NCBI RefSeq assembly: GCF_963853765.1
Contig: NC_088856.1
Span: 9,362,001 to 9,426,000, forward strand
Length of the DNA stretch: 64,000 bases
DNA from: Magallana gigas
Lineage: Eukaryota
Reading direction: 5' to 3'
This document shows, piece by piece, positions 10,375-45,879 of the stretch. The notes under the pieces are model-generated. The model saw only the letters and a program-made list of their open reading frames with translations. It did not search any database and was not told the DNA's origin. How positions within the stretch are numbered: the stretch's first letter is position 1; every line of letters starts with the position of its first letter. Position numbers and translations under genes: made by a program.

Positions 10375-13300
10375 ATCGCCGAGGATTTGGCATTGGGGAT
10401 AAGCTCCCAGCGTCTACAAACTGCTCCTCGTGGCTTGCGCCTGGAGCTCTTATACCATCTGACAACGAAATTTAAATCCTAGCCCGCTCGTGTGGCTTGT
10501 AACAAGCCCAGCGGAACTGCTAATACTGATAGGAGAAGGGGCAACGGTGAGTTATCTGGCACCTAAAAACCAATGCTTTTGGTAGAAGAGGCTCACCTGT
10601 CTTGGAGGACCGCTCATCTAAGAGAAGGTAAACTCTGATTCAAACCTCCACTGCCTTGTAGCCATACCAACATGTGGAAAAGACTAGGTGAGAAAAAACC
10701 CCACCAATATTAAAAGCTAAATGGGGAGACTGTGATCAACATCCAAGGATAGAAAACAGTCTAGGAAGGAAATTCCAAAAATTAAACCCCCTTTCCTTGA
10801 AGTCATTAGAGATAGTTTTGATAAAGCAAGAAATAAAGACATGACGATACTTATGGGCAAGTTCAATGCAAAAAATTGGAGCTGACAACACTGGTTACCA
10901 TGAAGTCATGTGCACTCAAGGATTAGACCGTATGAACGCGAATGTTGAGATAGTTGCTGTCTTAACCAGCTTGTGATTGGAGGAAGCATCTTCCCCCACC
11001 AACGAATTAATAAGGTCAACTGGAGATTACTAGATCACGTAACAGAGAATCAGATTGACCACATCTGCATAAACAAGAGGTTTCGTAAAGCATGGAAGGA
11101 TGTCAGAGTGATACGAATAGCAGATAATCCATCAGACCATCATCTACTAACGACAGCTGTTAGACTCCGCCTCAGGAAGTTTAATAACATAACAAACAAG
11201 ATAAAAAAGTACAATGTCAGCCTCCTCAAGACCGAAGAAGTGAGGATAGCATTCCACATCAGCCTGTCTAACAAATTCCAACCATTACAAGACCAGCTAG
11301 AAAACACTGATACCAACATTCCAAATAAGGGGCAACATATCAGCAAGATGTGGCGTGGAACATGTAAAGAAGTCCTTGGAAGAAGACAGACTCAGCACAA
11401 AGAGAGGATATCTGCAGACATACTGTAAAAATAGATGTGGAGAAGGAAAAGAGAGCAGCGCCTAACAACAGCTGAACAAGAGCAGCAAAAGCTAACGCTC
11501 AGGAGGACTACACAACCTTAAACAAAGAAGTTTAAAAATACCAGAAAAGATAAACGTGATACTGTTATAAATGAAAAAAGTCATACTGACAATCTTGCCA
11601 AATGCAAACTAGCCGAAGAAGCAGCAGGACAGGAACACTTTAGGGAACTATAAATGGTCAAGGAAAAGCTCTCAAACAAATTTCAACAGAAACACAAGCC
11701 AGTAAAAGACAAAAAAAATAGGAACCCTCTTGCTACATCTAAAAAACAACTGAAGAGATGGGTAGATCATTATGAGGAACTATTAAAAAGACCAGAATCT
11801 GAAAGACCTCCGGACAAACAGCCATGCTACACTGACCCTGCGATCAACTATGACATACCAACAAAGCCAGAGATCAGGAGGGCAATCAGCACGCTCATGA
11901 ACGGGCCTGATGAGATACATGTACCAGCAGAAGCCGTCAAACTGATATTAAACATTTCTTATAATCCTGCATAACCACTTCAAGAAGATCTGGGAGAAAG
12001 AGAGTATTACAGAAAAATGAAAAGAATGTATACTTATCAAGGTGCCAAAGGAAGGAAACCCAAGGGAGTGCAGTAATTACCGGGTACTTATGCTCTTGTC
12101 AGTGCTAGGCAATGTCCTCAACAAGATACTTCTTGAAGGAATGAATAAGGCAGTCGACCCAAAACTCTGTTATCAGCAGGCTGGATTTAAAGCAACAGAT
12201 CTTATGCAGACCAGATAGCTAGCTTATGTATCACCAAACAATCATGGGAGTAGAATTCCCTACTTAATGCCAACTTCTACTTCGAGGAAACGTTTGGCAG
12301 TGTGGACAGACAGACTGTCTGGAAGATACTGAGGCACTATGAATTATCCGTGATAATTGTTTCCCTAATTTGTATCACATATCACACATCGTCAGGCATG
12401 AAATGAAGAAATACCCATGCTGGCCGGATGTCTGACAGTTTAAAGGCAAAACAGAAGTTCGACAAGGATGTCTTCAGTCGCCATTTCTCTTCCACCTTGT
12501 TATTGATTGGATTTCGAAGACTCTTACATCAGACAGGAGAAATAGAACACATTGGACACTCCCGACAAAACTTGACTACATGTACCTAGACTTTGCCGAC
12601 GACTTGGTTTTCCTTTCACAAACCACAATCAGATTCAGAACAAGACAACTCGGCTGGCAACTCAGCAGGAAATGGACTAAAGATCAACCTGAAGAAAACA
12701 GAATTTATTACGATAAACACTACTGCCCAGATACCAGTTAAAGTTATTGATAAGTCTATCAAAGAATTTGGTCCTACATCTACATCTGCATTTGCATTAG
12801 CCCCAGGCTACGGATCCTTAACTCAATCGTATTTTATGGAGCGGAAACCTCGAGGACTACAAAAACATCCTTGCAGAGTATATAGACCTTCTGCAACACC
12901 TGTTTCAACGCATCTTAAACATCAGGTGGCCGGAGATGATCTTAAATGTAGATCTGTGGAGGAAAGCAGGACAATAACCAATGGAGATACAAATAAGACG
13001 TCGGAAATGGGGCTTGATAGGACATAATTTGACGAAACCACCATCGAGCATTACACAACCTTATCTGGAACCCCCTGGACAAGAGGAAAAGAGGACGTCC
13101 AATAAACTCCTGGAGGCGGGAAGCAGCGGCGGAGCTACAGGCACTAGAAACGACCTAGAACGGTGGCGCCATAACAGAACCGTGTTCGTGGGAAGACAGA
13201 CTTTTGTTGATGGCATATGTTCCTAACGGAACGTCCAAGAAACCCCTGGGGCGGGATGCAGAGGCAGAGCTACAGGCACTAGATATGACCTGAAATAGTG

Positions 13301-13395
13301 CCACCAGAGCAGTCCATAACCGTGTTCGTTGGAGGACTGTTGTTGGCGGAATATGTTCCTCACGGAACTACTGTCACAAGTATATTAAAGTAAGT
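10375..13395 (+). mobile_element. Decayed RTE-clade LINE (5' UTR, partial APE endonuclease, RT, 3' end)
   Basis: EN motifs LMG(D)FNAK.GADN, IGGSIFPH, TENQIDHICI, SDHHLL. RT motifs NYRVLMLLSV, QQAGF, RQGCLQSPFLF, LDFADDL. C-terminus IRRRKWGLIGH. Many stops and frameshifts; ends near aagtaagt. Confidence 0.92.
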
Positions 13396-14049
13396 TGATG
13401 TACTTGACCGAGTAAATAAACAAATACGTTCATAAAATCAAGTGAAAGAAAAACACATGTAATGGAATGTAAGAGAAAAATGAGGAAAAGGGACACTGTT
13501 ATTATAAAATAAATTGACATGATAAATGTAAAATGTTGAATAAATTTCTTAAATTATAATTTTGTTTTAGGTCAGATCTACATGATTTTATTATGTTCAA
13601 TGCATTTTTAAAGACAAAATGTTGAAAGTATTGAGTTTCTAGAGAACAAACAAGGATATGCAGTTCAAAAGTTCACATCCAAATTAAGCGGAAGGCAGCA
13701 CAACCGTTTTGTACAAGTTCGATAATGTCTTTGAGAAACTGCGAGCCTATATCGGAAAGTTCTAATAAGATTTACGGGCCTTGCTGCATTCTTCTTTAAT
13801 CTTTTAGAAAGTATACATGAGTGATCAACAATAACTAAATAATTGTAATTCTCCTGAACAGGAATCAAACATTGACCTAGTAACATTTGTATGCTTTAAT
13901 TATGTTTGCCTTTTTAAGGACAGGATATAAACACTTGTTTTAGTGCATATCTGCACTGTTTTAAAGTGACTGAAGGCTTGTTGGAGATATACCAATACAT
14001 GATCGTATACTAAGGCGGGGCGGCTACTTTGAACATTCATCATACCTTT

Positions 14050-26333: not shown

Positions 26334-26491
26334 NNNNNNNNNNNNNNNNNNNNNNNNNNNNNNNNNNNNNNNNNNNNNNNNNNNNNNNNNNNNNNNNNNN
26401 NNNNNNNNNNNNNNNNNNNNNNNNNNNNNNNNNNNNNNNNNNNNNNNNNNNNNNNNNNNNNNNNNNNNNNNNNNNNNNNNNNNNNNNNNNN
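26334..26491. other. Assembly gap; probably hides the 5' splice acceptor of the first visible receptor-ROCO exon
   Basis: N run. Other gaps: 30312-30492, 34463-34596, 34637-34781, 41364-41501, 42352-42512. Confidence 0.95.
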
Positions 26492-26674
26492 TTCACTCTT
26501 ACCGATTTCCTGTATACCCTGTGGATAAATGTCCCTCAAATGAAGCAGACTTTGAAAAAGCAGCAAGAAGACTAAATTGTTCTGAACACTCACGATACCT
26601 GTGCTCTCCTGATAAATACCTATCAAACTTGATAGAATTCTGCACGGATCGCAAAAAAGGGCTCTATGGAAAAG
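26492..26674 (+). CDS. Receptor-ROCO exon A (ectodomain, 4 Cys)
   Basis: HSYRFPVYPVDKCPSNEADFEKAARRLNCSEHSRYLCSPDKYLSNLIEFCTDRKKGLYGK(G), donor gtacag, phase 1. Confidence 0.85.
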
Positions 26675-26742
26675 GTACAGAATTAATATAACTATTTAAT
26701 AAACATTAACAAATTATTTGAGGAGTATCCTTTAAGTCACGG

Positions 26743-26821
<79 letters not shown>

Positions 26822-29800
26822 TTTTCCGTTATCTATTTTTCTGTTTCTAATTTACTCTTTTCCCAAATATTCAGATATGATTTTCATTCTTAATTGCAAT
26901 GAATAAAACAAAATAATAATTCACCTAATCATAGCTGTAATCCAAGCACCATTTTAATGTATCCTTTAGTTTTATTAACTATTTTTGTAAAAACTCCTTC
27001 CGTTAAAGCAAAACCCTTTTCAGTAAGATGCAGCTGGTTTCGTGCAGAGTTGTATGATATTTCATTTGTGGAAGAACACGAGAAAACTAAATAAATTGTT
27101 TAGTGAAAAAAAGTGACAGTCAAGTCCGAACAATATATCTTCTAATAGGTTAAGGAGAAAACAATTTCCGTTACTCATTTTATTTTAAATATGACAGGTT
27201 TCTGTATCCTATTGGAGGGCACAGGCGACCTCAATCATTACAGCTGTGTAGAGCGATTTAATAGCAGTTGTCCTGATCTGCCATATTACGATGATGAACT
27301 CTATACAAGTAAGACAATTAATTGTCTTTCAATGTTAATCAAACAAAACGAAACATACATTAGTTGATTTAAAAGTAATTTATTTTCATTATTTCAAAAC
27401 ACATACGTAAGAATTGGCTAAATGTAGTCCCTCACAGAATTAACTTATACTTTAGATATACTTGAAGTTTACTAAGAAGTAAACCCCAAGTATAGTTTTA
27501 AAGTATGCTTCAAATATACTTAAGGTAATTTGAATTTGCATGAAAATTAGGTTTTGTTAAGAATAAGAAAGATATATTATATGATTAAAGTAAAAGTGAC
27601 TTATTCTTTTGTTGAGTATTGCTGACTTATACTTGATAGCCTACTTTGCATAAAAATCCAAAATATTTAAAGTATTCTATAAGTATACTTGCGACAGGAA
27701 GTACTTCACAATTTCATTTCATATTCTACCTATAGATAAATCAATTCAGCATTATACATAAGTAATATTGTACATAATTTGAAATTGTATTTTTCAAATT
27801 GTACAAAGACTGATGATCTGCTGAACCATGAAAAGTTGACAATTAATACATATAGCCAAAATAATTAAATGCGAAATTTTCCACAGCATTACACAATACT
27901 TATAGAAGGGATTTTTTAACAACATGCACACAACAATGACTATTGTAACTGCAATATTTTGCCAAAAACGTGAATAAAAGTGGAGTTGCTTATTAATTTA
28001 CATAGAAATAACTTACTCCTCAAACATTGATGCTAGCTCCTCAGTGTAAAGTATACGATGTACATGTGTGAAATATAAACTATTTAAATCCTCTTTCTAT
28101 ATATATATTTCCCATGCTATAACAAGTTAAAGTCCCCACCGCCTGTTTTTACTTCCTAGCAAGGCAAGTCCTGAATAATCATTTTTAACGTAAATTTTAA
28201 ATAAATTTTTATTTTAAGAAAATTCTTTATTAAGATTTGGTTCATTTGGTGTGCCTGGCACTTTTTAAGCAATTATTATTTTTGATGCATTTTTAAAGAA
28301 AAAAATCATGAAATGAAAATCTTGAAACTTTGTCATTTTTCATGATCAGTGTTATCTAAAGTTGATTCTGATAAAAAATATATAAATTGATCTATGAAGT
28401 ATAAAAGCATATTAACATTAATTTTAGATTAAACCTGATATATACTTAGCTTATAAGTGGTTTATATTTGGCTTATAGCCTTGATTAAAGTACAAATGCA
28501 GTACAAATATTTTATACTTAAAGTATACTTGAATATACTTACATCTATACTTGACTAAACCACCTAAACTATTGTACTTGAAGTATAAGTATAGTATAAA
28601 TAAGTTACACTTTAATATAAGTTGTATAACTTAATTCCGTCAGGGGTGTAATCGCATAGTCTATATTGCTTTTATCTACATAAACTTGTAATAGAGGCAA
28701 AACCACGGTACCTAGGTAATAGTATAGTGGTTTTCATTAAACTCAATAAATCTCAATGTCATCTTATAAATTGTTAGCTATTTCAAAAATTAAGTTTTCT
28801 TAGTTCTTACTCCAAATTTCGGTAATAATTGAGATACTCTATTTAAACCAAAGTTTATTTTATATCGACGATTAAGAAATATTCCAACTTGACTAACTAT
28901 TCATGAGTGTCACAATTAATCTATACCTAGATTTTGATAATAAAAAAAAGGCTAAGGATTAATACGCTTATAATCGTGAATGAAATAAAGTACAAAATTA
29001 AACACATGTACAAAACGATTAAGTTATAGAACCTTTACTTTACCACCATGCGTATCAAGTAAGCCTGCCTTTTTAATATCGTTAACCAAGTAACCGAAAC
29101 CCAAAGCCAACACACTTAGCAAGGACTTAACACTACAACTATTATAACAATTTCCCAAAGTAAAAGAAATAGAACAATGATAACAAATGCGAGATATAAC
29201 AATGAACAGGTGATGCCATGAATTTAACAGTGAACGAGACAGGAGACTAGGGTCTAACTATCAACCTTAGGAGGCGAGCCGAATCGAACCTTAATAAAAG
29301 TTTCACGTCAACTGCTAGACTAAAGCTTATCCTCACACTTTATACACTTTGCGCTCTGGAGTAATGTTTTGTACAAACAATTTGAACGACAGAATGAAAT
29401 GTCATGATAACGAACAGAGTGTAAAATCAAAAGTCCAGAAGAAAAATACAATACAGGAGCAGAGCAAACACGGATCTCTACACGATTAAAAGTAGGATCA
29501 GGTGCCATGAGTGAGTATCCTCTGCTGACCGTTCACACCTACCGTTTGCTCTTTGTAGTAAAAGAGAAAACGGAAATATCCGCAGACAAATAGGTATTTA
29601 ATAATGGTCAAACAATAAGTAGGAAAAACGTCAGCTTCCCTTTGACCCAGCGGAAGGTCATATTTCAGACAAGATCGTTGTATCTGTCATAGAACTTACG
29701 TAATGCTGACTTCAATCGAGACTGTTGATAATCTTGTTTTGTTCAGGAGCTTGCCTAGCTTTAATGTATTAGTATCTCAAATAGTGTATTCCGAAATCGC

Positions 29801-30024
29801 TCTGCATAACAATGACACTTTCCGCATGTAAAATAAGTGATAACAACCAATCATACTATCGTTTAGTTTAGCATATAAAATGGATAAGCATGTCCTTAGC
29901 ATTTATACATGCTTAATAAAATACTATTATAGTAATTAAAAGTTAGGACATCACAGTTTGTCAGGCCACAAGACGGAAGGTAGAAAGGACTGACTGACAG
30001 ACAGAGACATATATACCAGTTTAT

Positions 30025-30108
<84 letters not shown>

Positions 30109-30229
30109 CATACAACTTATTGTGAGAAATGATAAAAAACTGCACAAAGGACTATATATGATATGGGCCTAAAATGCCCCCCCCCCTAAAATGAACATCA
30201 TCATTTTACTATAATTCTTTGTTTTCTTA

Positions 30230-30307
<78 letters not shown>

Positions 30308-33300
30308 CGTGNNNNNNNNNNNNNNNNNNNNNNNNNNNNNNNNNNNNNNNNNNNNNNNNNNNNNNNNNNNNNNNNNNNNNNNNNNNNNNNNNNNNNNNNN
30401 NNNNNNNNNNNNNNNNNNNNNNNNNNNNNNNNNNNNNNNNNNNNNNNNNNNNNNNNNNNNNNNNNNNNNNNNNNNNNNNNNNNNNNNNNNNNTGGTTCAA
30501 GTGCCCACAATTTAGTAATATGATATTGTAAAGACAACCTTTCTTGCTATTTTTGCATTTTTAGCATGAAACAGCTTGCTTTCAAGCAGTTATTTTTTCA
30601 GAAAACAAAGAGCGCATGCTTGAACAAACAAAATATTTTAAGCTGAGATGTATCTAACAAAGACTAATAAGTAACAAAAAAATTGTCGTTGTTCAAGCAT
30701 GCTCTATATTTCCCATTCGTAAGAAGATAAGAACAATTTTTGGCTGATTTTGATTGAATTATAGAAAGAGCGTCACTTCTCTCAAACATATACTGCCAGT
30801 GAGTGTATATATTTCATATCAACTCTTCAAAAAAAAATAAGTTAACATTTTATTGTACCCAAAGCACTTAAAAAATGTTAAATTATTGGGGCCAAATTGA
30901 ACTCATATCATATATAGTTCTTTAAAACAATTTCAATATTGAAATAATGCGTACATTTTTCAGGTCGACAAACAAAAGAGTTTAACAATTGGCAATAAAG
31001 TATTACATATCAAAATCACTAAGATATGTTTGACTGTGTTCTTTAAGAAAACTTGCCTCTTTTCTTTTTTTAGATCCAGCCTGTTTAGCGATCAACAAAG
31101 ACCTTCGCTGTTTTGTTGCTGACAGTGATTGCAAAGAGAAGTATAGTTTTTAGTCGAAAACATTTGTTTATACTTTTATTGGTACAGTTTATATGTACAT
31201 TTTAAAATAATATGTTTTATCACTGTTTTCAATTGTAGATCACATTCCTCTGAAGTGAAGACTGATAAATGGTTTTTAATTGTTGTTGTCTTTATGATTT
31301 GTTGTGCAATAGTGTTTGCAGTATATTGTGGTCTGATTCTTCATAAAAAAAGAAAAAAAGGTACAAAACTAAGTATATCAATTATTTATTTATCAAATAA
31401 ACTTCATGGCCGAAAATAATATTTTGACACTTCGGATTGTTTTGCAATTAATTGCCATTAAAACAACCTTTTAAAGTATACTAGTATACATCTACTTAAT
31501 TTTCACTATATAAAAGAGTAAATCGATCCCCTGAAAATCATTATGATTTATAAACAGACCGGTTCCCCGCACTGACTGAGTTTCTGCAAAAAAGATTTTC
31601 GGAACACCTATGAATTTCTGTAAACCTAAGAAAAAGTTTTGAAATTTTACGAATTCACAACCATATGATATTTATCTTGTTGCATTGTCCTTTTTGATTG
31701 GCTATACTTATTCATCTTTAGTGTATATCATAATTTTCCTATGGCACAATACGACGCGTGTGCAATTTGATTTGATTTTTTTTTTTACGTTAAGACTTTA
31801 AAAATGCACAAAATCTTAGAATTATGTTGATTTGAATTTTTTTCTGAATGATTACATCAGAATAATTACCAAGTTAAAGCTTTGTCTTAGGAAATACACT
31901 TGCGCGCGGGGAACTTGAACCGGCTCCCTCATGCTTGTATACTTTAATTGAATAAATTAATATATATAAATCGAAGCATTAAAAGTTCCTTTTAAGGATG
32001 ACGTTTACTCAGAATGAAAAAAAAATCCACTGATGATAATGAAAAACCATCTATTGTGTGTTATAGACCTTTGCTTGTATTGTTATTTTTCACTTTCAGA
32101 AAAGTAGGTCAATGACCTACTTTTTGAGTTAATGGCCATTGAATATTTATTGAAAATTCAAGAAAAATCCCATAAAATTTTACACTACGATTGAGATTTT
32201 CTTAATTATAAAAATATTACAAATAATTAAACACTTTAAAAAATAAGATACAGTTTACGAATGGTAGTGGCAATATATAAGTATACAACATTAAGATTTC
32301 AGCATCAATTTTTAAAAATAATTCAATCCGAATTTCCTCTATCAGTTTTAAAATTCCTACCCATTTTTGATTCAATTTTACAAAAAATTGAATGATGATA
32401 ATACAAAAACATTTATGATATTGAACTACTTATATTGACCTTATTCTGTTGGCATAAAATTTATATGAGGTCAATGATCAAAATTTTGAGATATGATGTC
32501 TTTTATCGTTTTTAAGCATTTTTCAATATTATTATTATTCGTGCCATAAGATTATTTTAATGAAAAAGTGAGGTAAAACCAACGGAAAATATGCAAAATT
32601 ACGTAGACTTAAATATAAAATCCTAACTTTTAATATTAGACTACTGCCAAAAAACTTTTAGCAGAAAACAAAATCTGCAAAATTTAGTCCGAATTTCCTC
32701 TGTTTGGCTAAAAGTCAAATTTTGTTTGAGCATAATTCCATAATAAAGTAAAACTATTGAATGTTTTGTCAATAATAATTCATTTCATAAATACTTTTTG
32801 TGTTTAGAACAAATTTTACTCATTGCATTGAACTTTTTAACAATCGGAATTTGAGAACTCAAACCCTGAGTAAATAACACCCTTAATCAGACCTACAGCC
32901 AGTAATGTAACAAAGTGTGCTTATTATATAAACCTCCTCATGGGATAAAGCCTTTATTTATATTCAGTTATTGATTATGTCTTCTAATCTTAATTTAAAA
33001 TTTATAAAAGCAGGTCAATTAATTATCATATCGACTGTAAATATTTTTTTTATATTGTTATTTACTTCTTAAAATGTTTATAACAAGTATTATAATTCAG
33101 ATATTTTTTATTTGTTATACCTCTTCAATTCACTAATTATATACTTAGTAAATTATTATATACATGTAAATGATTACAGCTAGATATGTACACAATACTA
33201 TATACATAAAGATCATGTAACTTGAGCTATCTTGCATGTACAATGAGAGGATATAATACTTAATGCCTGGTGTCCAATCCAATTCAATATAATCAATAAG

Positions 33301-35177
33301 ATATGTTTAAGAGAAAGCAAAGTTTTAAGTAACTGTTTCCGACCAGTTACATGAGCTGAATCGTAAATAAAAATCTATGGGTGAAAAAAAGTATAATCAT
33401 GTTCAAATTTTCCAGATAAAGAAAATATAAATACCAATGAATTGAGAGACTTTCTTGGAAAGGGACTTCTTGACATTATACATATTAGGGGAATCATTGT
33501 TGGTTGCACTGGAGCAGGGAAAAGCACTCTGTTCATGAGACTTCAGGATATGTGGTGGAAAGATACGATGAAGATAAATTCAACAAAAATAGCAGATGTG
33601 CATGTTAATAGCTTCGAACTTTTGAGGAAGAAAAAGACTATAAGAGGTACATGTAATAGGTCAAAATGATAAATTAATACTGGTTATTGGTTAGAAACCC
33701 TCATTTTTGTTATTTCAGCATTAAAAAATAAGATCTATTTAACTGATTCAACCAATATTCAAACATGCTAAAAAATTGCAATTTAAACAGCACGAATAAA
33801 CATACTTTTGCTAAACAACTATCTACGCCTGTAAAAAGTTATAGTGCTTTATTGCAGTTACAAAAGGCAGAAAGGCCAACAGAAATCAAACAATTACTTT
33901 TTCCAAGAAAGATATGCTAGAATCTCAAAAGAAAAAAAAAGGTCATACTGAACGTACAAACCATGACGATAAATGCAGTTTTGAAAAAGACGTAAGTACA
34001 CCACTTTTAAATAAAATCGAAGAAAAATCGACATCTATGCAAGAAGTTGACTTCGAACAACCCTCACATCCTCAGGAACCACAGACGCATACATGTAATA
34101 AGGAAACTCCTAATGGTGCGGATATCATGGACATTTCTTTGGAAGAAACACGTAGTACCAATGATGACCCAATGTCAAAAATTATGGATGCTGTTAAAAA
34201 AATACCAAAGGAGAACCAGAAACATCCAAGAATAACGTTTTTGGATTTTGGAGGACAAAGCATGTACTATGCATTCCATCAAATTTTTCTCAGTCCTAAA
34301 ACATTTTATATTCTAGTTGTGGATATGACAAAAAGACCTGATGAAAAAGTTCATGAAACAGAAGATAAATGCGGAGGCCGCTTTTTAACGTGGACGTATA
34401 AAGGTAACCTAATAAAAAAATTTGTAAATGTTCAGGCTAAACATTATCTAAAGAACATATACNNNNNNNNNNNNNNNNNNNNNNNNNNNNNNNNNNNNNN
34501 NNNNNNNNNNNNNNNNNNNNNNNNNNNNNNNNNNNNNNNNNNNNNNNNNNNNNNNNNNNNNNNNNNNNNNNNNNNNNNNNNNNNNNNNNNNNNNNNAATA
34601 TAAAAATATATCTGACACTAAAGATAACGAGTGTTGNNNNNNNNNNNNNNNNNNNNNNNNNNNNNNNNNNNNNNNNNNNNNNNNNNNNNNNNNNNNNNNN
34701 NNNNNNNNNNNNNNNNNNNNNNNNNNNNNNNNNNNNNNNNNNNNNNNNNNNNNNNNNNNNNNNNNNNNNNNNNNNNNNNNNTTGGTTGACATCGATTGAC
34801 AGTTTCAGTGATATCAATACACCAGTCATCGTTGTTGGCACCCATGCTGAACACAAATCCGAAGAAGTAAGACATATAATAAAGAAAACATTTATTTGTT
34901 TCTCAAAAACCTATTTGCTGCTATATTCAACTAGAATGGGAGTTGCATGCACATTAAAAACTTTTTAGAACTGGTTGTGGAAATGGTGTTATCTTTTTTC
35001 TTATGTCTTGTCTTTTATCTCATGTTTTTTTAATTGGAAGAAATGCAATTATTTAAAAAAGCAACGTAAGAGAACGTATAAAAAGCACTAAAGGAAAGCA
35101 TTAGTACTTAACTCCTATTTCGAAATCATGTTTTGTTGTCGAAAGTTAAAGTCGATGACGTCATATCACCTTCTAAA

Positions 35178-35228
<51 letters not shown>

Positions 35229-38200
35229 CATTTTTTTTTTTGCTTGAAATAAAAAAAAAACTTTATTTACTTCAATATTAAATAGTCTTATAAAAATCAA
35301 AATATATAATTTGTTGTTTAAAGAGTTAAAAAAACTGCTAAAAATTGTTTTTTAGATACATTACATTACAATGTGCATAATTGACAACAAATCTTTTGAT
35401 TTATGATCAGAAGTCTTATTTTCTACCTGGGTATCAATAACTTAGATTCAAGTTAAACTTCATAAAAATGTATGATCAAAATTAAATGTTTATTCTCCAC
35501 CCCGCAAGGCTACCCAATCAAATCTTACTCATAAGACTAAAAGTCTCTTAATTCTTACATTTGTACAGTAGCAAATCTTTAATCATTTCTTGATTGGTAT
35601 ATTTCTGTAAATGCACATTAAAATTTTGAAAATTGGTTTTAAATATTTTTTAAATTCATCTTTAAGCATAAACACACTGTTACAGTATATATATTCAGGG
35701 CATTTATAAATTCTCATACACAAAGCATCACTAGGCTAGGAATTGCCCACATTGGTCTAACACTTCTTATGAATGAGATAAAATATTTCATTATGTCCAG
35801 TTCTGGAAAGTCAGGCTGTCTCAAAGTGACCATAACCTATACACTATTTGATGTGCAATGACACAAAAAGCAAAATAGTTCACCTTTTTAGAAAGTGAAA
35901 GAAATACTTACATATACCGTTGTCTCATATTATTGGGCTACTACATATTGTACATGTATTATGCTTACCTGTATTGGAAAACATCATAATAATATACAAA
36001 TTAGAGCACGCTATGAATTCCGTAAGCTGATCTCCACAAAAGAAAGGTTTATGATTAGTGATTTATCCTATTCTGCATATCGAAAACACATATGTACCTA
36101 AACAACCTGAAACCCTATAGCCTAAGATGTTAACGCACAAAAGCAAATCTAGTGCTGATTTTAGTAATAATTATATAGACAATATTTATATGACTTGAAA
36201 TGTGAATATTTGTACATATAAAAAGGCCAATAATGTGTATTTATGAAAAACACAATTGTTCATAACCTACCATATATAACATTTGGCCTTCTTTTTAACA
36301 AAAATTGTAATAATGGTGTTTTTTATAGGCAAACGTTTGGTGCGGGTTTTGCTGTAAGTGTCACTAAATGGTTTATCTTGGTCAGTTAAGGACTCGATAG
36401 TGCAGTAAACAAAGTTTGACCACCCTATTGTTTAGGTAACAATTACGCTAGCTCCAATATGGCCTAAAATTAAAACAAGTACAAGCTTCTAAAACATTTA
36501 ATCATAAAGCAAGAATCCCTTAAAGTTCTTTGCATGTTGCCAATAATATTTTATATACCAAATTTTAATTCAATTCTGATTTTCAAGAAACTAATAACAA
36601 CAGAATAAGTATTATGGTCAAAGGTGTAACCAAGATTGTACCAAACTTTGTAAATTACGAAAAATAAAATCTCGTTTACATAATTGTTAATACTGGTTTC
36701 TCTATCTTGATTATAACTGGACTTTTGAGTTTAGATAAACAGAAGAAATTATTAAATGTTGCTTTGATAAGAATGAAATACGACTTTTATATCATTCATA
36801 ACCGAAATCCCTATTAAACTCACAATCGAAATTAAACTGACGAGTTTAAACAATATGCTCAGAAGAGGTATCATTCACGTTTGAGTGAAAAAAATGAAGT
36901 AATTGATTATTAATCAATTATTTGTTATAAAAATATCAAATACTGTAAAATATAATAATGTATGATATCAAACAATATTGTACAAAATGATAAATTAAAT
37001 GTATAAAATAATATAATTGTATTATATGATATTGTATCGTATGATATTGTTATGTACAATATTGTATGCAATCATACAATGGTATATAAAATGGCATTGT
37101 ATCATATGGTTTTGTAATGTGTGATATTGTACAATACATGGTAATGAATAATATGCGTTTTGTTTTCTCGAGGACTTTCATGTAAAACAATAATTCATAA
37201 AAAAAAAAACCGATGAACTACGTTAATCCATAAAAGTTCCCTTACATTTCGTGCATGTTTTAAATTAAACTGTTAAAAATTATAATTCCTACCTATTGAA
37301 TACGCTTTGCAGATTTTCCATGCACTAATATTTAATTGCAATGTTTTGTTAGTTGTCAATTATGATCGTTTTCTCCCATTCCTCCGCAGAAGTTTGAGCA
37401 TATCTCAACGTTGTCATTCTCTACGGATCCAGATTCAATATAAAGGGCAACTATTCTCATTTAAAAGTAAAACCAACGGGCAACAACTACTCTAGATATT
37501 TTAAGAACATACAAAACGCAGTTTCTGTATTAGATAATGAAAAAACTCGGTGAGCTTTGTAGTCTATGCATACAAATGTTTGATCTTAGTCTAACTACCA
37601 CTATATTTATGCTTCTCTTGTCAAAGGATAACAGCGATCAAAAGACAGCTTTCTCTTGTTATGGCCTGGGGCCTGTCAGAGGTGTTTTAAGATTAACCAC
37701 AGGGTGAACTGTTTTTAATATTAGTCAGATAACAAAAACTGTTGCACGGCCTGATTTTTAAAAAATACGTTATTTGTTGTATTTGGACATTTACAGATGG
37801 TTTTATTAGATAACTAGATAATATATTTACTACTTGTAGGAATGCAGAGCTTTCTTTGACGAGTTCTTTGCAATATTTGAGGGAAAAGAATATCTTAAAA
37901 GACATTTGCATACTAAAAGAAGATTTGCCATCAAGTTTCCATCTAAAGGGCCAAAATTGCAGAAGCTAACTAGGATCAAAAACTGCATTGCTCGACTTGT
38001 CGAGAAATCACTTTCGCAACAATGGAAGGAGACAATTCGACCTGCCTGCGCAATACTTGAATATATCTTACTAAAACAAAAACATCTTAAGATTATATCG
38101 AGAGAAGCATTGTCAGAAAAAAATAAAACTTTAGATGCTGAATTTAGGTTATCTGAGAGTGAAATTACAGAAATGTTAATATTCCTAAATAGAGTTGGTT

Positions 38201-41200
38201 CTTTGTTGTACATCGATGAAGATGAACTAAAAAATACTGTTATTCTTGATGTTCATTGGTTTGTTGGAGCTTTTAAATGTGTGATTGCCGAGTCAATAGA
38301 GATCGAAGAAATTACCAACAACAAAACAACTATTTTTCACGAGACCGGTGAACTAGACGATCATGATTTGGACACCATTTGGAGCAAACATGAAAACAAA
38401 AAAGAAAATTATCTTAAACACAAGGATAAGATTTTGTCGTACATGGAACACATGGGTTTGCTTACAATCTGCAATTGGGAAAATTCTGGTATCGATCAGG
38501 GAAACATGACTAAAACAGCAGTGCATGGAGTTTGGTATTATTTTCCTAGCATGAACAAAAGAAAACTCGACAATGCTCTTGAAAAATTTAGAGAATACAA
38601 AACCTCATCTATTCTTTGTCTTCAGTTTTCTGAAAAAGGACAGTTACCAATGTTAGTTTTTTATAAACTTGTTTCTAAATGTATTGGAATGAGTGGATGG
38701 TCCATTTTAAAAGAAGGAGACAGGAATAGCATTTTTGAAAATGTGGCTTGCTTTTTGTTAAAAAACCACATCGTTGTCATCTGCATTTGCCAATTTCAGA
38801 TCCAGGTACAGGTGTGTTTACCAAAAGACAAAATTTCGCCAGATATTCTTCATGAGGTACAGACAACGATTGTACAAGAAATAAAAAAGTTCAAGAAATA
38901 TGAATTTAAAATAGGATTCAAGTGCGAACGAGGTGTTTTCTGTTCTGAAGAAGATAATTCGTTTATTGCTGTGGAAGATTTTCCTATCAAACAACTATGT
39001 GAAATGTGCAACGTTGGCGAAAAGCACTTTGTCAGCAACAAGATTTGCTGGGTAATATTTACCTTTTGAGTGTTTATTATTGATTATGAAATACAATTTC
39101 AAATTGGTGGTCTGCTTAATTTGTAATCAAGAAAATTGCTATCTCAAAACACGTGTAAGGCACGTTTTTCACTCCTTTTCCCTTTCTATTTGATAAAGCA
39201 ATGCATTTACCATTTCTAGTCAATCAATTGTTTTATTTTATAAACCTATTGGATCTCTTTTGACGTATCCTGCCTTTTTATTAAGATATGAAAACAGCGC
39301 CTTGATCAAAATGGGGAATAATATAATCAACATCTTTACAATATAATAGAAATGTTTAACTACATAAGATTAAAATCACTTTTTAAAGCTCATTTAAATT
39401 GTAAAATGTGTAATTTATTCAGAAATGGAACCTGAATGTTAACTTAAGACGTGATGCTCAGTTTGAACATTTTTTAATATTTTGATTTTACAACGAAATC
39501 AATATAATTTTCAATTCGAGCATTAGAAAGATGCTTATACAAATATCAATATATCATTTTCTTCAGTACAATATGCTTATATTATCGAAGTGTCTTGATA
39601 ACAAATCTGTTTTCTATTTTATAGTTTGCACAAACCCAACAGGAATCGTTAAGTGAGTACTAGAAAAATGAGTGTGTTTCACTTACCTACCGTTTTTCAT
39701 TAATAAACATTTGGTAATGGCCAACTAATTATACTTTAACTACTTCACAACCTAGCAATTGTCAATCATAGTAGCTTCAACACTACTCTTAATCATAAAA
39801 CATGTATTTATACATTTCAGTTTATTTTTCAAAGTCATTTGATTTAAAAAAAATAATTTTTTCGATGCTTTAAAGAAGATTATCTTTGTAAAACTGCATT
39901 GCGAATCTCTACGACAGAATGACAAAAGCTGACAATAAAGTAGGACTTAGTTGTTGTCCTCGCTTTCTTGTTATCGTCACGCAAGTCCAAGAAAATCTGA
40001 GTACCCAAGCGCAGCGTATAACATTAGCAAGCGCCACCTCGGTGATATCTTTCAATAACTAAGGTTTATTACTAAACTAAGATGTTCTATTACGTATTAT
40101 TATCAAGATGTACCTCTTCTCTCCCATTGCATCGACACGAATGTTGCTAAATAAGTCATCATTCACGATCATGGTACAGCTGAATCAATGTTCAAGAACA
40201 GCTTGGAATTGTTACATGTGTTTTGTGATTCTGGATCAGATTTAAGAAGTTGTTAGCTGCTAGGTGATGGCTCAGAATAAATGAAACATTAAGTATTACT
40301 TAATATATTTCTGTCTATATCCACTCTCTTTCTTATACTCATACTCTTTGAAAGTATTTGTGTACTGATTAAAACATTTTAAAATGATTATCAAAACAAA
40401 TCTTTGTACATGTTGCTACATGCCACCATTCATATTGCATTTTGCCATCCAAAATTACAACAGTTGTTGACCGTCAACATTTTGAATGCTTAACTGAAGT
40501 TTTCTTGCTATTTTTTCTTTCGCATCATTTTTCATCTGAACGTCCATCTGTCCGTATGTGAACGTTTTCATCAGGACCAATCAACGAATTAAGACCAAAA
40601 TGCAAACAAAAAATTGTTGACGGTATTTAGGTTTGCTAACAAATGAAGGAAAGTAAGAATGAGAGTAGTTCGTAATATGGTATTATCTTTGGTAACAATG
40701 TAGAAGGTTCAATCTGGAAAATAAATATGTAGTCATGCAACATGGGTACCGATCAGACCCAAACTAACACCAGAGTAAACCCAAACTAAACCCCGGGTTT
40801 ACTTTTTGGGTTTACTTGGGGTTTACTCTGGGTTTACTTTTTGAAAATTTGGGTCCACTCGGGGTTTACTTTGGGTTTACTCGGGGTTTACTTTGGGTTT
40901 ACTTTGAAATTGCTTTTGAGGTCAACTGTATGCACTGAAGTGTGAAGCGTGAAGCAGACTGTCTAGTATTTTATTTTACCATCCTACTGCCCGTAATTTC
41001 TACCCTTTGAATATTCTGAATACACAGTTAGCGTTTGCTTTCAGGGGTATACTTCTGACTGGGTTTACTCTCTGTGTTTACTCTGGGTTTACTTTGTGTT
41101 TACTCTGGGTTTACTTTGGGTTTACTCTGGGTCCACTGTAGTAAACCCGAAGTAAACCCAGAGTAAACCCAGAGTACACCCAGAAAGTAAACCAAGGGTT

Positions 41201-44200
41201 TAGTTTGGGTTTACTTTCTGTTAGGTTGGGTCTGCTCGGTAGTGTAGCTTACTGGATTGCAAGTTTTTGAACATCGAATTTCCTTTGTAGGGCAGGGGTG
41301 TGTTGTTAAAATTGAAAACTCGTGACAATATTAAGAGAATAGTGGTTGATGAAAAATGAAAGCNNNNNNNNNNNNNNNNNNNNNNNNNNNNNNNNNNNNN
41401 NNNNNNNNNNNNNNNNNNNNNNNNNNNNNNNNNNNNNNNNNNNNNNNNNNNNNNNNNNNNNNNNNNNNNNNNNNNNNNNNNNNNNNNNNNNNNNNNNNNN
41501 NGAAATTCAGGGGACCATGCAAATTTTTTCAATATATCCATATTTCAATATAAGCGAAATTGACTGACGTGAAGCCGCCAATTTGAAAGTTTAATCCCGA
41601 TGTAAGCAGAGAAAACCAAACCCGAACAAATTATTTGGTCATCATTTATTTATTACAGTGAACAGATTACATGGAATATTAGTCCTTGAAAGTTTGATTA
41701 AAACTATATCCGCAAGTTTTGTAAGTTTCATTTTGTTACTATCTTTAACCTCATCATAATCTCCAGTCGCATTCTTTTACGTTTTAGAGAAAAATCACCC
41801 GACTCAAACGCTTCAATTACTGCTAAATGCTGCTTGTATATCATCGTAGGTGTACTCGCGATAATCTCAAAATCCTTACTATTTTAAATTTAGGCTTTGT
41901 CCTTTTATCAATAGCCATAACTAGCTCATATTTAGTGCCCGAAGTTAAGTTTTTTCTTTCCCGTGGGGTTTCCATATTACGTCTAGCCTCAATACATCCG
42001 TATACGTAAAATAAAAATCAATATTGAATAAATGATATACAAAGGTGTGAATTGATGTTCTCATCATGTGTGTTTTTATACTTCTTTTAAGTAGTAAAAT
42101 TTATGATAATAGACTTATGATAAATTACTGTCATTAACCGTGACGACAGCCACCAGGGAGTACTTCAATATAACCGTTATAAAAACAACTAATTATCACC
42201 TATGGGGACCGATCAGTGGCTTCAATATAAGCAATATTTCAAAATAGCCGATTTCATTCTATCCATTCAATCAATGCAAAGAAAATGAGAGGCAAAAACT
42301 GGGGATTTATTTCTATTTCAAAATAAGCGGAATTTCAAAATAAGCTATTTCNNNNNNNNNNNNNNNNNNNNNNNNNNNNNNNNNNNNNNNNNNNNNNNNN
42401 NNNNNNNNNNNNNNNNNNNNNNNNNNNNNNNNNNNNNNNNNNNNNNNNNNNNNNNNNNNNNNNNNNNNNNNNNNNNNNNNNNNNNNNNNNNNNNNNNNNN
42501 NNNNNNNNNNNNGTAATGGTTTTATTCATGAATAACCGCTTAAAGTCTGAAAATGGGCACAACCTATTAGATCTAGATAGTAGCTATTGAATTAAAAAAA
42601 TTATATATACTTTCATTTCCAAAAAAAAAATGTTGCTTGACTCAAGTTTTTATAAACACCTTTCCTTACTTGTCCTTGTAATCAGTCAATATTTTTCAAT
42701 AACTCTGAAAAAATATATATTACATGTATCATAATTCATGCAATCTACTAAAACTTCATATAAAACACATAGCTATTTTATGGGAAAGTAAATTGTGAAA
42801 TCGACAAAGAGAAGCAACCTATTATAGCTAAGTTCTATATATAACAAAGATTTTTTAAGGGGACATGGTCATGATTGAAGTCAATGCTATTTTCCCATTT
42901 TTACCGTTAACAATGCATTTGAAATGCATTTCTAATGATCAGCCAAAATTTGAAGAGTCAGTCAAATAAATATAACCATGATACAAAGCTATCGGTTTTT
43001 GTCAGGTAAACAAGGCTTGGGCCTTATTCTTGTTTACAGTATCATTACATCATTATATATTAAATAAATGATTAATGCAAAATTTAACTTTTGAAGGTTT
43101 TTAAATTTCTAAATTTGAACAAAATGTTATCGCTTATTAACATTACTCAATGAGGTTTTCTTAATCTGTCCTGTGAAACAAAGGAGGATGAAGTGCGTCG
43201 TATTTTTTCTTTTTTTAAATTCAAATTTGACTATTAATTTAACACTTTCTTTAAAGGGTTTTTTTGTCAATAAATTTCAGATAAAGGCATGTTTTGATAA
43301 AAAAAATTATAACAGGGGGATGAAGCCCCTCTTACATCTCATGCAACGTCCATGTTTCATGCAAACATCATTTATTCAGAAAGAAGATTTTATTTAGATA
43401 TTTTATTTAGATACCGTAGATTTGTTCACGTTTTCAAAAACATAATCAAGTATATGGTTTACAACAAATCACTCAGTGGAATATGTATGTTATCTGAACG
43501 CACACGTGCTTGCCTCATTATTTATATATTTAAACAAAGTTGTCTAATTTATGCTATCTGCTCTATGCATGATGAACTATGCATGATTTATTCAGAAAGA
43601 AGATTCTATTTAGATATTTTATTTAGAAAACATAATCAAGTATATGGTTTACAACAAATCACTCAGTGGAATATGTATGTAATCTGAACGCACAAGTGCT
43701 TGCCTTCATTATTTGTATATTTAAATCAAAGTTGTTTAATTCATGCTATCTGTTCTATGCATGATGAACTCGCCATAGACGTTTCGCCATGGTTTTAAAC
43801 AGAGAGCTGCAATCTCAGTTACCTCGTTCTGAGCATCATCCAGAGAGTTCATTTTATCAAAAGAAATTGAGGATTTAAAAAACGATTTGGAGTGTTTTGT
43901 TTATTTATTTTACATTCAATTTCAATGAATAATACATATCTCCTTTCTTTACGTAAATATCCTATAATTTATCGGTGCAAGCATATATTTGAACACCCCC
44001 CCTCCCCATGTACACGTAGCTCTGCCAAAGTGGGTCCACCACCTCACTCATATTTGCTATTACTAGGTACTTTACTTTAAATAATAATATTACTTTGAAT
44101 ACGTTTAGAGCAAATTCTTCGGTCTTTACGTATTTATTCAATATCACTACAAGCATATATTTTCATACCCCTTCTCAATCCCCACCCCCAAGTTAGCTCG

Positions 44201-45879
44201 TGTCCGCCACCTTACTCTCATATTTTTTATTACTGAATAGCTTACTAAATTTAAAAGTGTTTCAAAGAAAAGTAGATGTTTCAAATAACGGTGTTTTACC
44301 AATTCAGTACTAGCTATTTATCAAATAAATGTCATCTCACAGGTGTTAAAATATCAAAGGTGTATGAAGTAACTCTGTAGGCATTTCTTTGTTAATTGGC
44401 AAATTGTCGTAATATATAAGTATAGTTATTATGTAGTATGTACGTTATAATCTTAGGAAAACGAATTTAATTTGATTTTATTTTTCAATTATATAGAACC
44501 AGATATTTTTTGTATCCTGTGTAACCGTCAAGATAATAATTAAAAAAAAAATCTAATTATTGTCTCAAAAATTTCATCACTTATGTATCTAAAAAATAAT
44601 ATCTTTTGTTATAGACATTAAGAAAACATTAAAGAAATTCCACGAAGAAACTGACGAAGGACTTACTTCCATACTTCATATTATACAGGCTTCCCTGGAC
44701 GGAAACGTTGAAAGTTTCTTGTTTTATCTAAAACATGAAATTGGTAACAGAAAACATTTACTCTCAAAACCAGTTCAAAATGGTTGGAATGTAATGCACT
44801 TCGCTGCAAAGGGTGGAAATCTTAAAATTTTTCAAACTTTTAAATCTGAAGATTTAAACTTGTGTCAAAAAACACATGATCAAATGACTGTTTTACATAT
44901 CGCTTCATTATATGGTCACTTTGATCTTTGCAAATATATCTTAGAAAATAATGATTTTCAAACCATTTTGGAAACAACGTCGGTGTCTGGTAAAAACGCT
45001 TGTCATTACGCAGCAGAAGCAGGGTCAGTGAGCATATTTAAACTATTAGCCACAAAATGTATCGACCCAATAGCAACAACTAATAATGGACAAAACGCGT
45101 TCCATATTGCATGCATATACAATCAGTTTGAAATGTGTGAATATATTTCCAAACACTACCATGATTTAATATCTGCAGAATGTCAAGAAGGATGGAACGC
45201 CACTCTTTATGCCGCAAAGAATGGCAATACAAATATTTTGAAATTTCTTCAAAAAGAAAATGTCAGTTTTGAGCACAAATCTGAGAGTTCCAGGAACGCG
45301 TTACACATTGCATGTGACAACGGACATTTCGAAGCAAGTAAATATTTGTCTGACACGTTCCCGTGTTTATTGAATGCCGGTGATACTAAAGGTAGATATG
45401 CTTTTCACTTTGCTGCAAGAAGCGGTTGCGTTGAAATTTTAAAAGATCTTGAACTTAAGACTGACGTGACTCGAGCAACGTCTAGCGGAATGAACATACT
45501 TCATATGGCTTGTTTACATGACCACGTGGACATGTGTAGATATATTTTAAACAAATATCCTGATCTTAACCTTAAATTTTCAAGAAAACATTGGACAACT
45601 GCGCATTTCGTCGCCGGGGAAGGCAACAGTATGGGGAACGAGATCGAAATATTTGAAATGCTTTTGAATGCAAAAAAGCCTGTAAATTTTCGTGAACTTA
45701 CCAGAAAGAACAACTCAGTTCTAACAATGGCAATTAAATGCAATAAGTATGACTTTGCTGAATTTCTTTTTGAAACATATCGTAGTTTGTTAGATATTCC
45801 AAATGCAAATAATCCGATGGAGACAGGAAACGAAGATCCGAACATGAGAGAACTCCTGAAAAGACATTTAGAATGTTAA
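26492..45879 (+). CDS. Multi-exon gene: Cys-rich ectodomain - TM helix - Roc GTPase - COR - ankyrin repeats (putative receptor-type ROCO protein, ~1280+ aa, 5'-incomplete)
   Basis: Exons <=26492-26674, 27198-27308, 31074-31140, 31239-31360, 33416-33646, 33858-34403, <=34782-34866, 37840-39051, 39625-39652, 44615-45879. All visible sites are GT-AG with matching phases; the acceptor of exon G lies in a gap. Confidence 0.8.
26745..26818. repeat. (AT)n microsatellite
   Basis: Perfect AT run in intron A-B. Confidence 0.98.
27198..27308 (+). CDS. Receptor-ROCO exon B (ectodomain, 3 Cys)
   Basis: gacag|gt, FCILLEGTGDLNHYSCVERFNSSCPDLPYYDDELYT, donor gtaaga, phase 1 to 1. Confidence 0.85.
27429..28645. 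mobile_element. ~1.2-kb non-autonomous TIR element with aagtatactt-type subterminal repeats (intronic)
   Basis: Left ccctcacagaattaacttatac versus reverse complement of right end ccctgacggaattaagttatac. TSD not resolvable. Confidence 0.6.
29395..29760 (-). mobile_element. 3' fragment of a Penelope-like element (intronic, antisense)
   Basis: Reverse complement matches 48600-48860: tatcaacagtctcg.ttgaagtca..., ggtgtga.cg.tcagcagaggat..tcactc...ggcacctgatcctac. Confidence 0.75.
30025..30108. repeat. (GATA)n microsatellite
   Basis: About 21 GATA units. Confidence 0.97.
30231..30305. repeat. (TA)n microsatellite
   Basis: Perfect TA run next to a gap. Confidence 0.97.
31074..31140 (+). CDS. Receptor-ROCO exon C (ectodomain, 3 Cys)
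   Basis: Long pyrimidine tract ttttag|at, (N)PACLAINKDLRCFVADSDCKE(K), donor gtatag, phase 1 to 2. Confidence 0.85.
31239..31360 (+). CDS. Receptor-ROCO exon D (transmembrane helix + basic stop-transfer)
   Basis: ttgtag|a, SHSSEVKTDKWFLIVVVFMICCAIVFAVYCGLILHKKRKK, donor gtacaa, phase 2 to 1. About 24 hydrophobic residues followed by HKKRKK. Confidence 0.85.
33416..33646 (+). CDS. Receptor-ROCO exon E (Roc G1/G2)
   Basis: ttttccag|at, ..HIRGIIVGCTGAGKSTLFMRL..NSTKIADVHVNSF.., donor gtacat, phase 1 to 1. P-loop GxxxxGKS. Confidence 0.9.
33858..34403 (+). CDS. Receptor-ROCO exon F (low-complexity insert + Roc G3)
   Basis: ttgcag|tt, ..PRITFLDFGGQSMYYAFHQIFLSPKTFYILVVDMTK..TWTYK, donor gtaacc. 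Confidence 0.92.
34782..34866 (+). CDS. Receptor-ROCO exon G, visible part (Roc G4)
   Basis: WLTSIDSFSDINTPVIVVGTHAEHKSEE, donor gtaaga, phase 0. 5' end lies in a gap. Confidence 0.88.
35140..35225 (+). mobile_element. Helitron-type 3' terminus (intronic)
   Basis: Hairpin ctcgttgc-tc-gcaacgag (35196-35213), 7-nt spacer, then CTAG followed by T (35221-35225). Confidence 0.65.
36955..37145. repeat. Low-complexity (ATTGT)-like degenerate repeat
   Basis: Many attgta/atatga/tacaat units. Confidence 0.55.
37840..39051 (+). CDS. Receptor-ROCO exon H (end of Roc + COR domain)
   Basis: ttgtag|GAA, 1212-nt open frame with WKETIRP, MLIFLNRVGSLLY, VILDVHWFVGAFKCVI, LSYMEHMGLL, WYYFPSM, FYKLVSKC; donor TGG|gtaata, phase 0. 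Confidence 0.92.
39625..39652 (+). CDS. Receptor-ROCO exon I (28-nt micro-exon linking COR to ankyrins)
   Basis: ttctatttttatag|TTTGCACAAACCCAACAGGAATCGTTAA|gtgagt (FAQTQQESL). Converts phase 0 to phase 1 as exon J requires. Confidence 0.75.
40744..41244. mobile_element. Tc1/mariner-type MITE with GGGTTTACT(C/T) decamer sub-repeats, copy 1 (intronic)
   Basis: Degenerate TIRs gtaccgatcagacccaa / ttgggtctgctcggtagtg|ta. Internal segment shared with 59573-60016. Confidence 0.8.
43371..43770 (+). repeat. Tandem duplication of ~185-210 bp (43371-43579, 43587-43770), intronic
   Basis: tttattcagaaagaagatt...ctatgcatgatgaact repeated; first copy has an extra ~25 bp. Confidence 0.85.
44615..45879 (+). 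CDS. Receptor-ROCO exon J (terminal exon, ~10 ankyrin repeats)
   Basis: ttttgttatag|ac, open to TAA at 45879. Repeats GWNVMHFAAKGGN, MTVLHIASLYGH, KNACHYAAEAGS, QNAFHIACIYNQ, WNATLYAAKNGN, RNALHIACDNGH, RYAFHFAARSGC, MNILHMACLHDH, WTTAHFVAGEGN, NSVLTMAIKCNK. Confidence 0.92.

Follow-up and report, generated by a model that had tools for sequence, protein, structure and literature searches.

A predicted membrane-spanning ROCO protein of the oyster Magallana gigas, with a family-shared cysteine-rich ectodomain, a Roc-COR module and a candidate ankyrin tail

The window analysed here is a stretch of 64,000 nucleotides (nt) of the Magallana gigas genome (NCBI RefSeq assembly GCF_963853765.1, contig NC_088856.1, positions 9,362,001 to 9,426,000 of the forward strand), and coordinates are counted from its first letter. 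Its 26-46 kb stretch probably holds a single expressed oyster gene of ~19.4 kb, with ten exons encoding a single-pass membrane protein, a reading to which we assign a probability of about 0.7. In this protein a Cys-rich outer domain and a transmembrane (TM) helix would be followed by a Roc GTPase domain, a COR domain and ankyrin repeats. Nine exons were read on the + strand between 26.4 and 45.9 kb from stop-to-stop frames and splice-site reading, and their phases are compatible (Table 1): all fit from exon A through exon F, and again from G to H. The visible exons are open and in phase over ~1,150 codons, in a window that is AT-rich (GC about 0.27-0.33). The first-pass annotation of this DNA had claimed ten in-frame exons. 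Nine of these were read with fitting phases, whereas the tenth is only a candidate and the starts of exons A and G fall in assembly gaps. There is no AG acceptor between the first gap and the first Cys of exon A. Homologues have five residues between the last residue of exon F and the first visible one of exon G; little of exon G is therefore missing, and F and G are probably continuous across the gap.

Table 1. Exons of the gene, assembly gaps and other features of the window. Phases are given as start to end.
Feature	Positions	Strand	Phase	Content	Identity to homologues (tblastn)
Exon A (visible part)	26492..26674	+	ends 1	First third of ectodomain, Cys 1-4, N-C-S sequon; open reading frame and donor read	54-64% (ectodomains)
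Exon B	27198..27308	+	1 to 1	Ectodomain Cys 5-7, N-S-S sequon	
Exon C	31074..31140	+	1 to 2	Ectodomain Cys 8-10	
Exon D	31239..31360	+	2 to 1	Stalk, 24-residue TM helix, HKKRKK stop-transfer	
Exon E	33416..33646	+	1 to 1	~30-residue juxtamembrane segment, Roc beta1, P-loop GCTGAGKS (G1), switch I	43-49%
Exon F	33858..34403	+	ends 1	Acidic low-complexity ~130-aa insert inside Roc, G3 (DFGGQ), switch II	
Exon G (visible part)	34782..34866	+	ends 0	Roc G4 (VIVVGTHAE)	45-82%
Exon H	37840..39051	+	0 to 0	End of Roc, COR-A, COR-B, C-terminal Cys cluster (CxxC...CW); 404 codons	
Candidate microexon I	39625..39652	+	0 to 1	28 nt; predicted from splice signals	
Exon J	44615..45879	+	starts 1	Linker, about 10 ankyrin repeats, stop codon	
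Assembly gap	26334..26491			Hides the beginning of exon A with its start codon and any signal peptide	
Assembly gap	30312..30492			Inside intron B-C, away from coding sequence	
Assembly gaps	34463..34596 and 34637..34781			Intron F-G; hide the exon G acceptor and ~13 nt of exon G	
Assembly gaps	41364..41501 and 42352..42512			Last intron	
Microsatellite (AT)37	26745..26818			Perfect; intron A-B	
Microsatellite (GATA)22	30025..30112			Perfect; intron B-C	
Microsatellite (TA)37	30231..30305			Perfect; intron B-C	
Minisatellite, 11/22 nt	40795..41193			GGGTTTACTTT; last intron	
Last minisatellite block	41140..41193			Reverse complement of the preceding block	
Region of differing composition	10001..14000			GC 0.40, AT skew 0.13-0.26	
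Open reading frame	10973..11428			151 aa	

RNA contigs of four public runs (X1-X4), coming from three studies, were mapped on positions 28463-34462. Three joints with GT..AG borders were found: 31140>31239, connecting exons C and D, in X1 and X3; 31360>33416, which takes exon D with its TM helix to exon E with its P-loop, in X1, X2 and X3, from three studies; and 33646>33858, connecting E and F, in X4, X1 and X3. A single X1 contig of 2781 nt holds C, D, E and F at 0-1 mismatch. Its loose end at 31074 is identical to the last 30 bases of exon B, so the B-C splice is also seen in RNA. Because the C-D, D-E and E-F joints lie in spliced contigs, the membrane module and the GTPase form one transcript. 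The possibility of two separate genes, one for a TM protein and one for a ROCO protein, was rejected on the D-E joint. This splice had been singled out for checking by the first-pass annotation; it is present, so transcripts are not split between D and E. Further downstream, exon H was present at 86-100% of sampled words in 20 public runs from 12 studies, one run being on record as RNA-seq; for RNA runs the figure was 96-100%.

The contig pieces end at 34403, the end of exon F, and what lies beyond can be set against the gene model by arithmetic, which is not observation. The 2781-nt X1 contig runs 1338 nt past exon F, the sum of G (~98 nt), H (1212 nt) and 28 nt, and about 183 nt of it would lie upstream of the visible exon A. 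An X4 contig of 4495 nt starts at exon E and runs 3716 nt past exon F, a length that by the same arithmetic fits G, H, I and J followed by a 3′ untranslated region of ~1.1 kb.

Two minor features of the RNA mapping were also recorded. An X3 contig carries a GT..AG joint at 33991>34317 that removes 325 nt within exon F, comprising most of the acidic Roc insert, and shifts the frame. Its depth is 8 and its shorter side measures 24 nt; either noise or an infrequent splicing error may account for it. In introns B-C and D-E (30063-30862 and 31863-33062), all four runs gave many short, high-depth contigs on both strands and with many loose ends. Rather than exons of this gene, they resemble dispersed repeats or pieces of transposons whose transcription takes place elsewhere.

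Transcription could also come from a decaying, non-functional copy that yields no working protein, in a family that is large and fast-evolving. Three gaps do hide coding parts and the minor joint removing 325 nt from exon F breaks the frame, yet the visible exons are open and in phase, the G1, G3 and G4 motifs and the ten Cys of the ectodomain are intact, and spliced contigs were obtained in several studies. We consider decay very improbable.

Exons A-C encode ~120 residues with ten Cys and two N-x-S sequons. In all of 42 aligned ectodomains the ten Cys are unchanged, and most of these sequences also keep the N-C-[ST] sequon. Ten Cys would be enough for five disulfides. The TM helix of exon D reads WFLIVVVFMICCAIVFAVYCGLIL, with a mean Kyte-Doolittle hydropathy of 2.88. 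It is followed by HKKRKK, on which side the positive-inside rule is satisfied, and about 30 residues separate this basic motif from Roc beta1. The ten-Cys ectodomain, the 24-residue helix and the HKKRKK stop-transfer of the first-pass annotation are thus all read in exons A-D. The type-I topology that it had proposed rests on the homologues, which begin with hydrophobic, signal-like segments; the gene's own N-terminus lies in a gap. An outside location of the ectodomain is further favoured by its invariant Cys, by the sequon and by the positive-inside rule.

The AlphaFold model of the ectodomain is a confident alpha/beta structure, with a predicted local distance difference test score (pLDDT) of 89.7 and a predicted template modelling score (pTM) of 0.81. 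Pfam gave no match on any of the 42 ectodomain members. A profile search against the PDB returned only spurious Elongin matches, the best Foldseek hit in the PDB had E=3.3, and the best of 48,161 chains in a wide VIA-align comparison reached Z=3.0. In the ESM Atlas the fold was found only in mollusc clusters, including two nSTAND3-ankyrin clusters (TM-score 0.67-0.94). One mollusc cluster is labelled 'FZ domain-containing' in the Atlas; it has no Fz match at all, and a Frizzled-CRD reading was rejected.

The Roc motifs G1 (GCTGAGKS), G3 (DFGGQ) and G4 (GTHAE) are present in the window and conserved in 24 relatives. Exon F alone matches Pfam Roc with E=5.8e-6 and 27.0 bits, which equals the cut-off; homologues score 44-47 bits. 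In a search of PDB sequences, the Roc region of a homologue matches M. barkeri Roco2 (MbRoco2), LRRK2 and CtRoco. G1 and G3 are canonical. At G4 (34842-34853) the Asp of guanine specificity is replaced by Glu, giving THAE. Close relatives vary between Asp and Glu at this position (THAD, THLD, THAE), and the TH-x-[DE] form resembles the G4 motif of LRRK2, which is THLD. The spacing from G1 to G3 is ~185-195 aa in the closest clade against ~65 in the sisters that end in a Death domain, and the ~130-residue insert within Roc is therefore clade-specific.

Exon H matches Pfam COR-A with E=1.2e-9 and 38.6 bits, against a cut-off of 35.3. A profile built from this exon and its homologues matches CtRoco (E=1.2e-5) and LRRK2 (E=1e-3) in the COR-A region. 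The AlphaFold2 (AF2) model of exon H, with a pLDDT of 77.1, matches the 299-residue COR domain of CtRoco (3DPT_B) over 352 columns (E=1.4e-9, TMt 0.65); LRRK2 and LRRK1 are further fold matches of this model. Because the match extends over the whole CtRoco COR domain, COR-A and COR-B are both present. That Roc and COR lie in one polypeptide is indicated indirectly by the fitting phases of G and H, by >20 homologues that are collinear across the junction and by the E-F contigs, which run 1338 and 3716 nt further. Pfam matched no kinase, leucine-rich repeat (LRR) or Death domain in any exon, nor in the closest full-length homologues P0001 and P0010, and no DED in any exon. The RNA joints and the collinear homologues support the proposed architecture, in which ectodomain, TM, Roc, COR and ankyrin follow one another and kinase, LRR and death domain are absent.

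Searched exhaustively with HMMER, exon H returned 362 proteins at E<=0.001. The best full-length homologues are oyster RefSeq models annotated as "uncharacterized protein". Two come from S. cucullata: XP_062606508.1 (950 aa) has a signal-like N-terminus, the same ectodomain, TM, Roc and COR, and stops short of ankyrin, while XP_062607057.1 (1293 aa) has the same series followed by ankyrin. Isoform X1 of C. gigas LOC105325100 (1372 aa) comprises signal peptide, ectodomain, TM, Roc, COR and ankyrin. Models of C. virginica (LOC111106843 and LOC111106871), C. angulata and Ostrea edulis are also among them. Collinearity with the window was seen for C. gigas XP_034310230.1, the two C. virginica models, S. 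cucullata XP_062607057.1, O. edulis 'ankyrin-1-like X3' and Logan transcripts. In the homologue mapping, identity to the window was 54-78% for the ectodomain exons, 43-82% for the Roc exons and 34-50% for COR. The architecture is thus conserved in four genera of oysters, and full-length homologues with this domain order are annotated in C. gigas, C. virginica, Saccostrea and Ostrea. Three S. cucullata models (P0029, P0167 and P0025) show immunoglobulin domains after the TM helix and before Roc-COR, where a protein that crosses the membrane once would not be expected to have them. These models may result from gene-model fusion, or the proteins may pass the membrane a second time.

Exon J matches Pfam Ank_2 with E=1.4e-47, and about 10 repeats were counted in it. 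The phases of exon H (end, 0) and exon J (start, 1) do not match, so a tenth exon must lie between them; spliced directly, H and J would run into a stop five codons on. In relatives whose COR is followed by ankyrin, the "...CW" that closes COR is separated from the ankyrin linker by 8-10 unconserved residues plus a split codon, and the intervening exon should therefore be a microexon of 25-31 nt. A scan by splice signals produced >100 candidates. The one at 39625-39652, 573 nt past exon H, is the best by far, with ttttctattttatAG upstream and GTGAGT downstream; homology cannot place the microexon, as its residues are unconserved.

The phase break between H and J, with its stop after five codons, would also suit a gene whose main product is ectodomain-TM-Roc-COR, exon J being used in a minor isoform or belonging to a separate downstream unit. 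Relatives of this shorter form exist (S. cucullata XP_062606508.1, and proteins of 900 aa in C. angulata and 930 aa in C. gigas), and the 2781-nt X1 contig stops, by arithmetic, about where H or I ends. Such a product is nonetheless hard to reconcile with exon J itself, which over its full length, linker included, shows 53-56% identity to the ankyrin ends found in C. virginica, O. edulis and one Logan transcript, relatives annotated or assembled with the order Roc-COR-microexon-ankyrin. The 28-nt candidate with its consensus splice sites and the 4495-nt X4 contig, long enough for E through J and a 3′ untranslated region, point in the same direction, and we regard exclusion of the ankyrin exon from the normal product as unlikely. 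That the ankyrin tail would be part of this protein is well supported by homology and phase. The putative union of the ankyrin exon with the ROCO gene, as first proposed, has thereby gained homologues of the same order and a candidate microexon.

A search of protein collections with P0001 for long transcripts of this gene found only relatives. A search with the ankyrin exon gave fragments of open-reading-frame size (~420 aa, 90-94% identity) that hold no junction information; they are genomic or unspliced, because their N-termini read into the intron. In O. edulis 'ankyrin-1-like isoform X3' (P0182), the G4 exon is followed by such a microexon and the ankyrin exon, and the whole COR exon is skipped. 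The same skip would stay in frame in the window, where exon H runs from phase 0 to phase 0. Alternative splicing could then yield several products, in which COR and ankyrin are each either present or absent.

When the ectodomain alone was used as the query, the same domain was found, at 59-72% identity to the query, ahead of DED, HEPN_DZIP3, NADAR and AIG1/GIMAP modules. Among the retrieved proteins it also precedes Roc-COR-Death, Roc-COR-UBA and ankyrin-only tails. Fusions of the ectodomain both to Roc-COR and to other effectors, which the first-pass annotation had suggested looking for, were found. The gene is not a singular invention: it is one output variant of a large oyster family, whose ectodomain-TM module is shared with DED, HEPN, NADAR, AIG1, Death, UBA and ankyrin-only tails. 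The window ectodomain is 57-66% identical to those linked to DED, HEPN and NADAR (57-62% for the DED-bearing proteins), 52.5% identical to an AIG1-linked one and ~34-44% identical to those with Death, UBA or ankyrin-only tails. Cross-output identities of 52-66% are similar to those with other ROCO-linked ectodomains and lie above the conservation of Roc-COR. A quick ectodomain tree places the window's ectodomain with a ROCO-linked group, with a value of 92 in the Shimodaira-Hasegawa-like approximate likelihood ratio test (SH-aLRT); the other output types are interleaved with weak support, too weak for shuffling events to be counted. Phase 1 is found both at the end of the ectodomain-TM module and at the start of the cytoplasmic part, an agreement that is compatible with exon shuffling.

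Kaur, Iyer, Burroughs and Aravind (2021, eLife, PMC8195603) described a Crassostrea expansion with a constant Cys-rich extracellular domain, a TM segment, DED-TRADD-N and a variable C-terminus. The passages of that paper drawn on here list Death-like, STAND, HEPN, AIG-GTPase or ankyrin modules after DED-TRADD-N and propose receptor-like sensing of pathogens or cells; a ROCO output is not among the outputs in these passages. Judged from architecture, the domain described there is probably the ectodomain of the window. As far as those passages go, the window protein shares with the family a Cys-rich outer domain and a TM segment ahead of variable immune modules, but it has no DED/NCOA6-clade TRADD-N module and only ~30 residues from the helix to Roc. 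The outer domain of the window also occurs, at 40-44% identity and with a TM-score of 0.67-0.87 to the nSTAND3-ankyrin clusters, in oyster proteins of the types ectodomain-TM-ankyrin and ectodomain-TM-nSTAND3-ankyrin (C. virginica LOC111108435, C. gigas 'ankyrin-2-like'), which likewise have a TM helix and ankyrins on the cytoplasmic side. Between the membrane and the ankyrins they carry a STAND ATPase or nothing, where the window protein has a ROCO GTPase.

Outside oysters, an in silico study of the Aplysia immunome (PMC9334734) reported ROC-COR in TLR-like and MyD88-like proteins. These are likewise mollusc immune-type proteins with ROC-COR; they differ from the window protein in their LRR and TIR or Death domains, in having another outer domain and no ankyrin tail, and a TM-adjacent Roc is not stated for them. 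Brown-algal LRR-ROCOs have been proposed as immune receptors (PMC11378527). No transmembrane ROCO with such an ectodomain was found in the literature searched outside subscription journals, and the annotation present is "uncharacterized", in agreement with the earlier impression that this architecture had not been characterised. The finding brings together the ROCO GTPases and the oyster Cys-rich receptor-like family; it is new as a ROCO branch, for which we infer a receptor mechanism.

ROCO proteins with solved structures (CtRoco 3DPT, 3DPU and 6HLU; LRRK2; LRRK1) share the Roc-COR tandem with the window gene. Unlike them, the window gene has no LRR, kinase or WD40, carries its ankyrins C-terminal of COR and not N-terminal of Roc, and possesses an N-terminal ectodomain with a TM helix, while ~130 inserted aa separate switch I from G3. 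DAPK1, with the order kinase-ankyrin-Roc-COR-death, also joins ankyrin and Roc-COR in a cell-death or immune context. Compared with DAPK1, the window gene is without kinase or death domain, has the order of ankyrin and Roc-COR reversed and spans the membrane. Oyster sisters of the window gene end in a Death domain, as DAPK1 does.

To our knowledge, known ROCO GTPases are cytosolic and are recruited to membranes indirectly. In the protein described here, the outer domain would serve a large oyster family as its unvarying part for sensing or docking, and behind this domain and the helix each member would attach one or another immune or cell-death output. In the window's member that output would be a membrane-held GTPase switch. 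Ligand or contact would cluster the outer domains and thereby change the COR-mediated dimer state; the nucleotide state of Roc would follow, as it does in bacterial Roco and in LRRK2, and with it how far the ankyrin platform is accessible to partners. Whether the ankyrin tail is made would depend on inclusion of the microexon. Ligand-driven switching of the Roc-COR dimer is a plausible hypothesis. In full, the proposal is that of a single-pass receptor with a conserved five-disulfide outer domain of unprecedented structure, whose engagement from outside would set the dimer state of COR and the nucleotide state of Roc at the membrane and in this way gate the ankyrin platform, as part of a 'one sensor, many outputs' system (GTPase, DED/Death, HEPN RNase, NADAR, NLR-like) with a 28-nt microexon attaching the ankyrin output. 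We put it forward tentatively, as possible rather than probable.

Lumenal and extracellular placement share one topology, and the protein could instead be an endomembrane-anchored ROCO of the endoplasmic reticulum, Golgi or endolysosome, with a lumenal Cys-rich domain, that signals in trafficking or organelle damage like LRRK2 and is not a surface receptor. LRRK1 and LRRK2 act on endolysosomal and Golgi membranes. The ectodomain is conserved and not diversifying, which would suit such a role. The sisters that carry DED, Death, HEPN or NLR-like modules behind the same domain speak against it, this pattern being read as receptor-like immune or apoptotic signalling in the passages of PMC8195603 used here, and we think endomembrane residence rather unlikely.

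Several points weigh against the surface receptor proposed above or against the complete gene model. The G-H and H-I-J splices are predicted, as is the microexon. The RNA support consists of contigs. For this gene the signal peptide is not visible, its site falling in the gap at 26334-26491. G4 is THAE where THxD or NKxD would be expected, which makes guanine specificity putative. Residence in the plasma membrane as opposed to an endomembrane, a ligand and GTP binding are all presumed. Finally, the ectodomain is the best-conserved part across output types, which argues against a role in diversifying pathogen recognition.

Membrane activation of ROCO GTPases such as LRRK2 is an open question, and a tethered ROCO with a clusterable outer domain would offer a simple test of the effect of proximity or dimerisation on the Roc cycle. 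For invertebrate immunity, the gene would add a GTPase branch to an oyster-specific family that reuses one outer domain ahead of death and defence modules, and the common ligand or self-contact of this family is an attractive target. Practical value is limited for now; beyond architecture and expression, all of this is inference.

Elsewhere in the window, open reading frames of at least 150 aa gave no Pfam match, including one of 151 aa that lies in the region 10001-14000. This region is unlike the rest of the window in its GC content and strong AT skew. Of the perfect microsatellites in introns A-B and B-C, the (TA)37 tract abuts the gap at 30312 and is the probable cause of that assembly break. 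The minisatellite of the last intron lies just before the gap at 41364, and the orientation of its last block makes it an inverted satellite.

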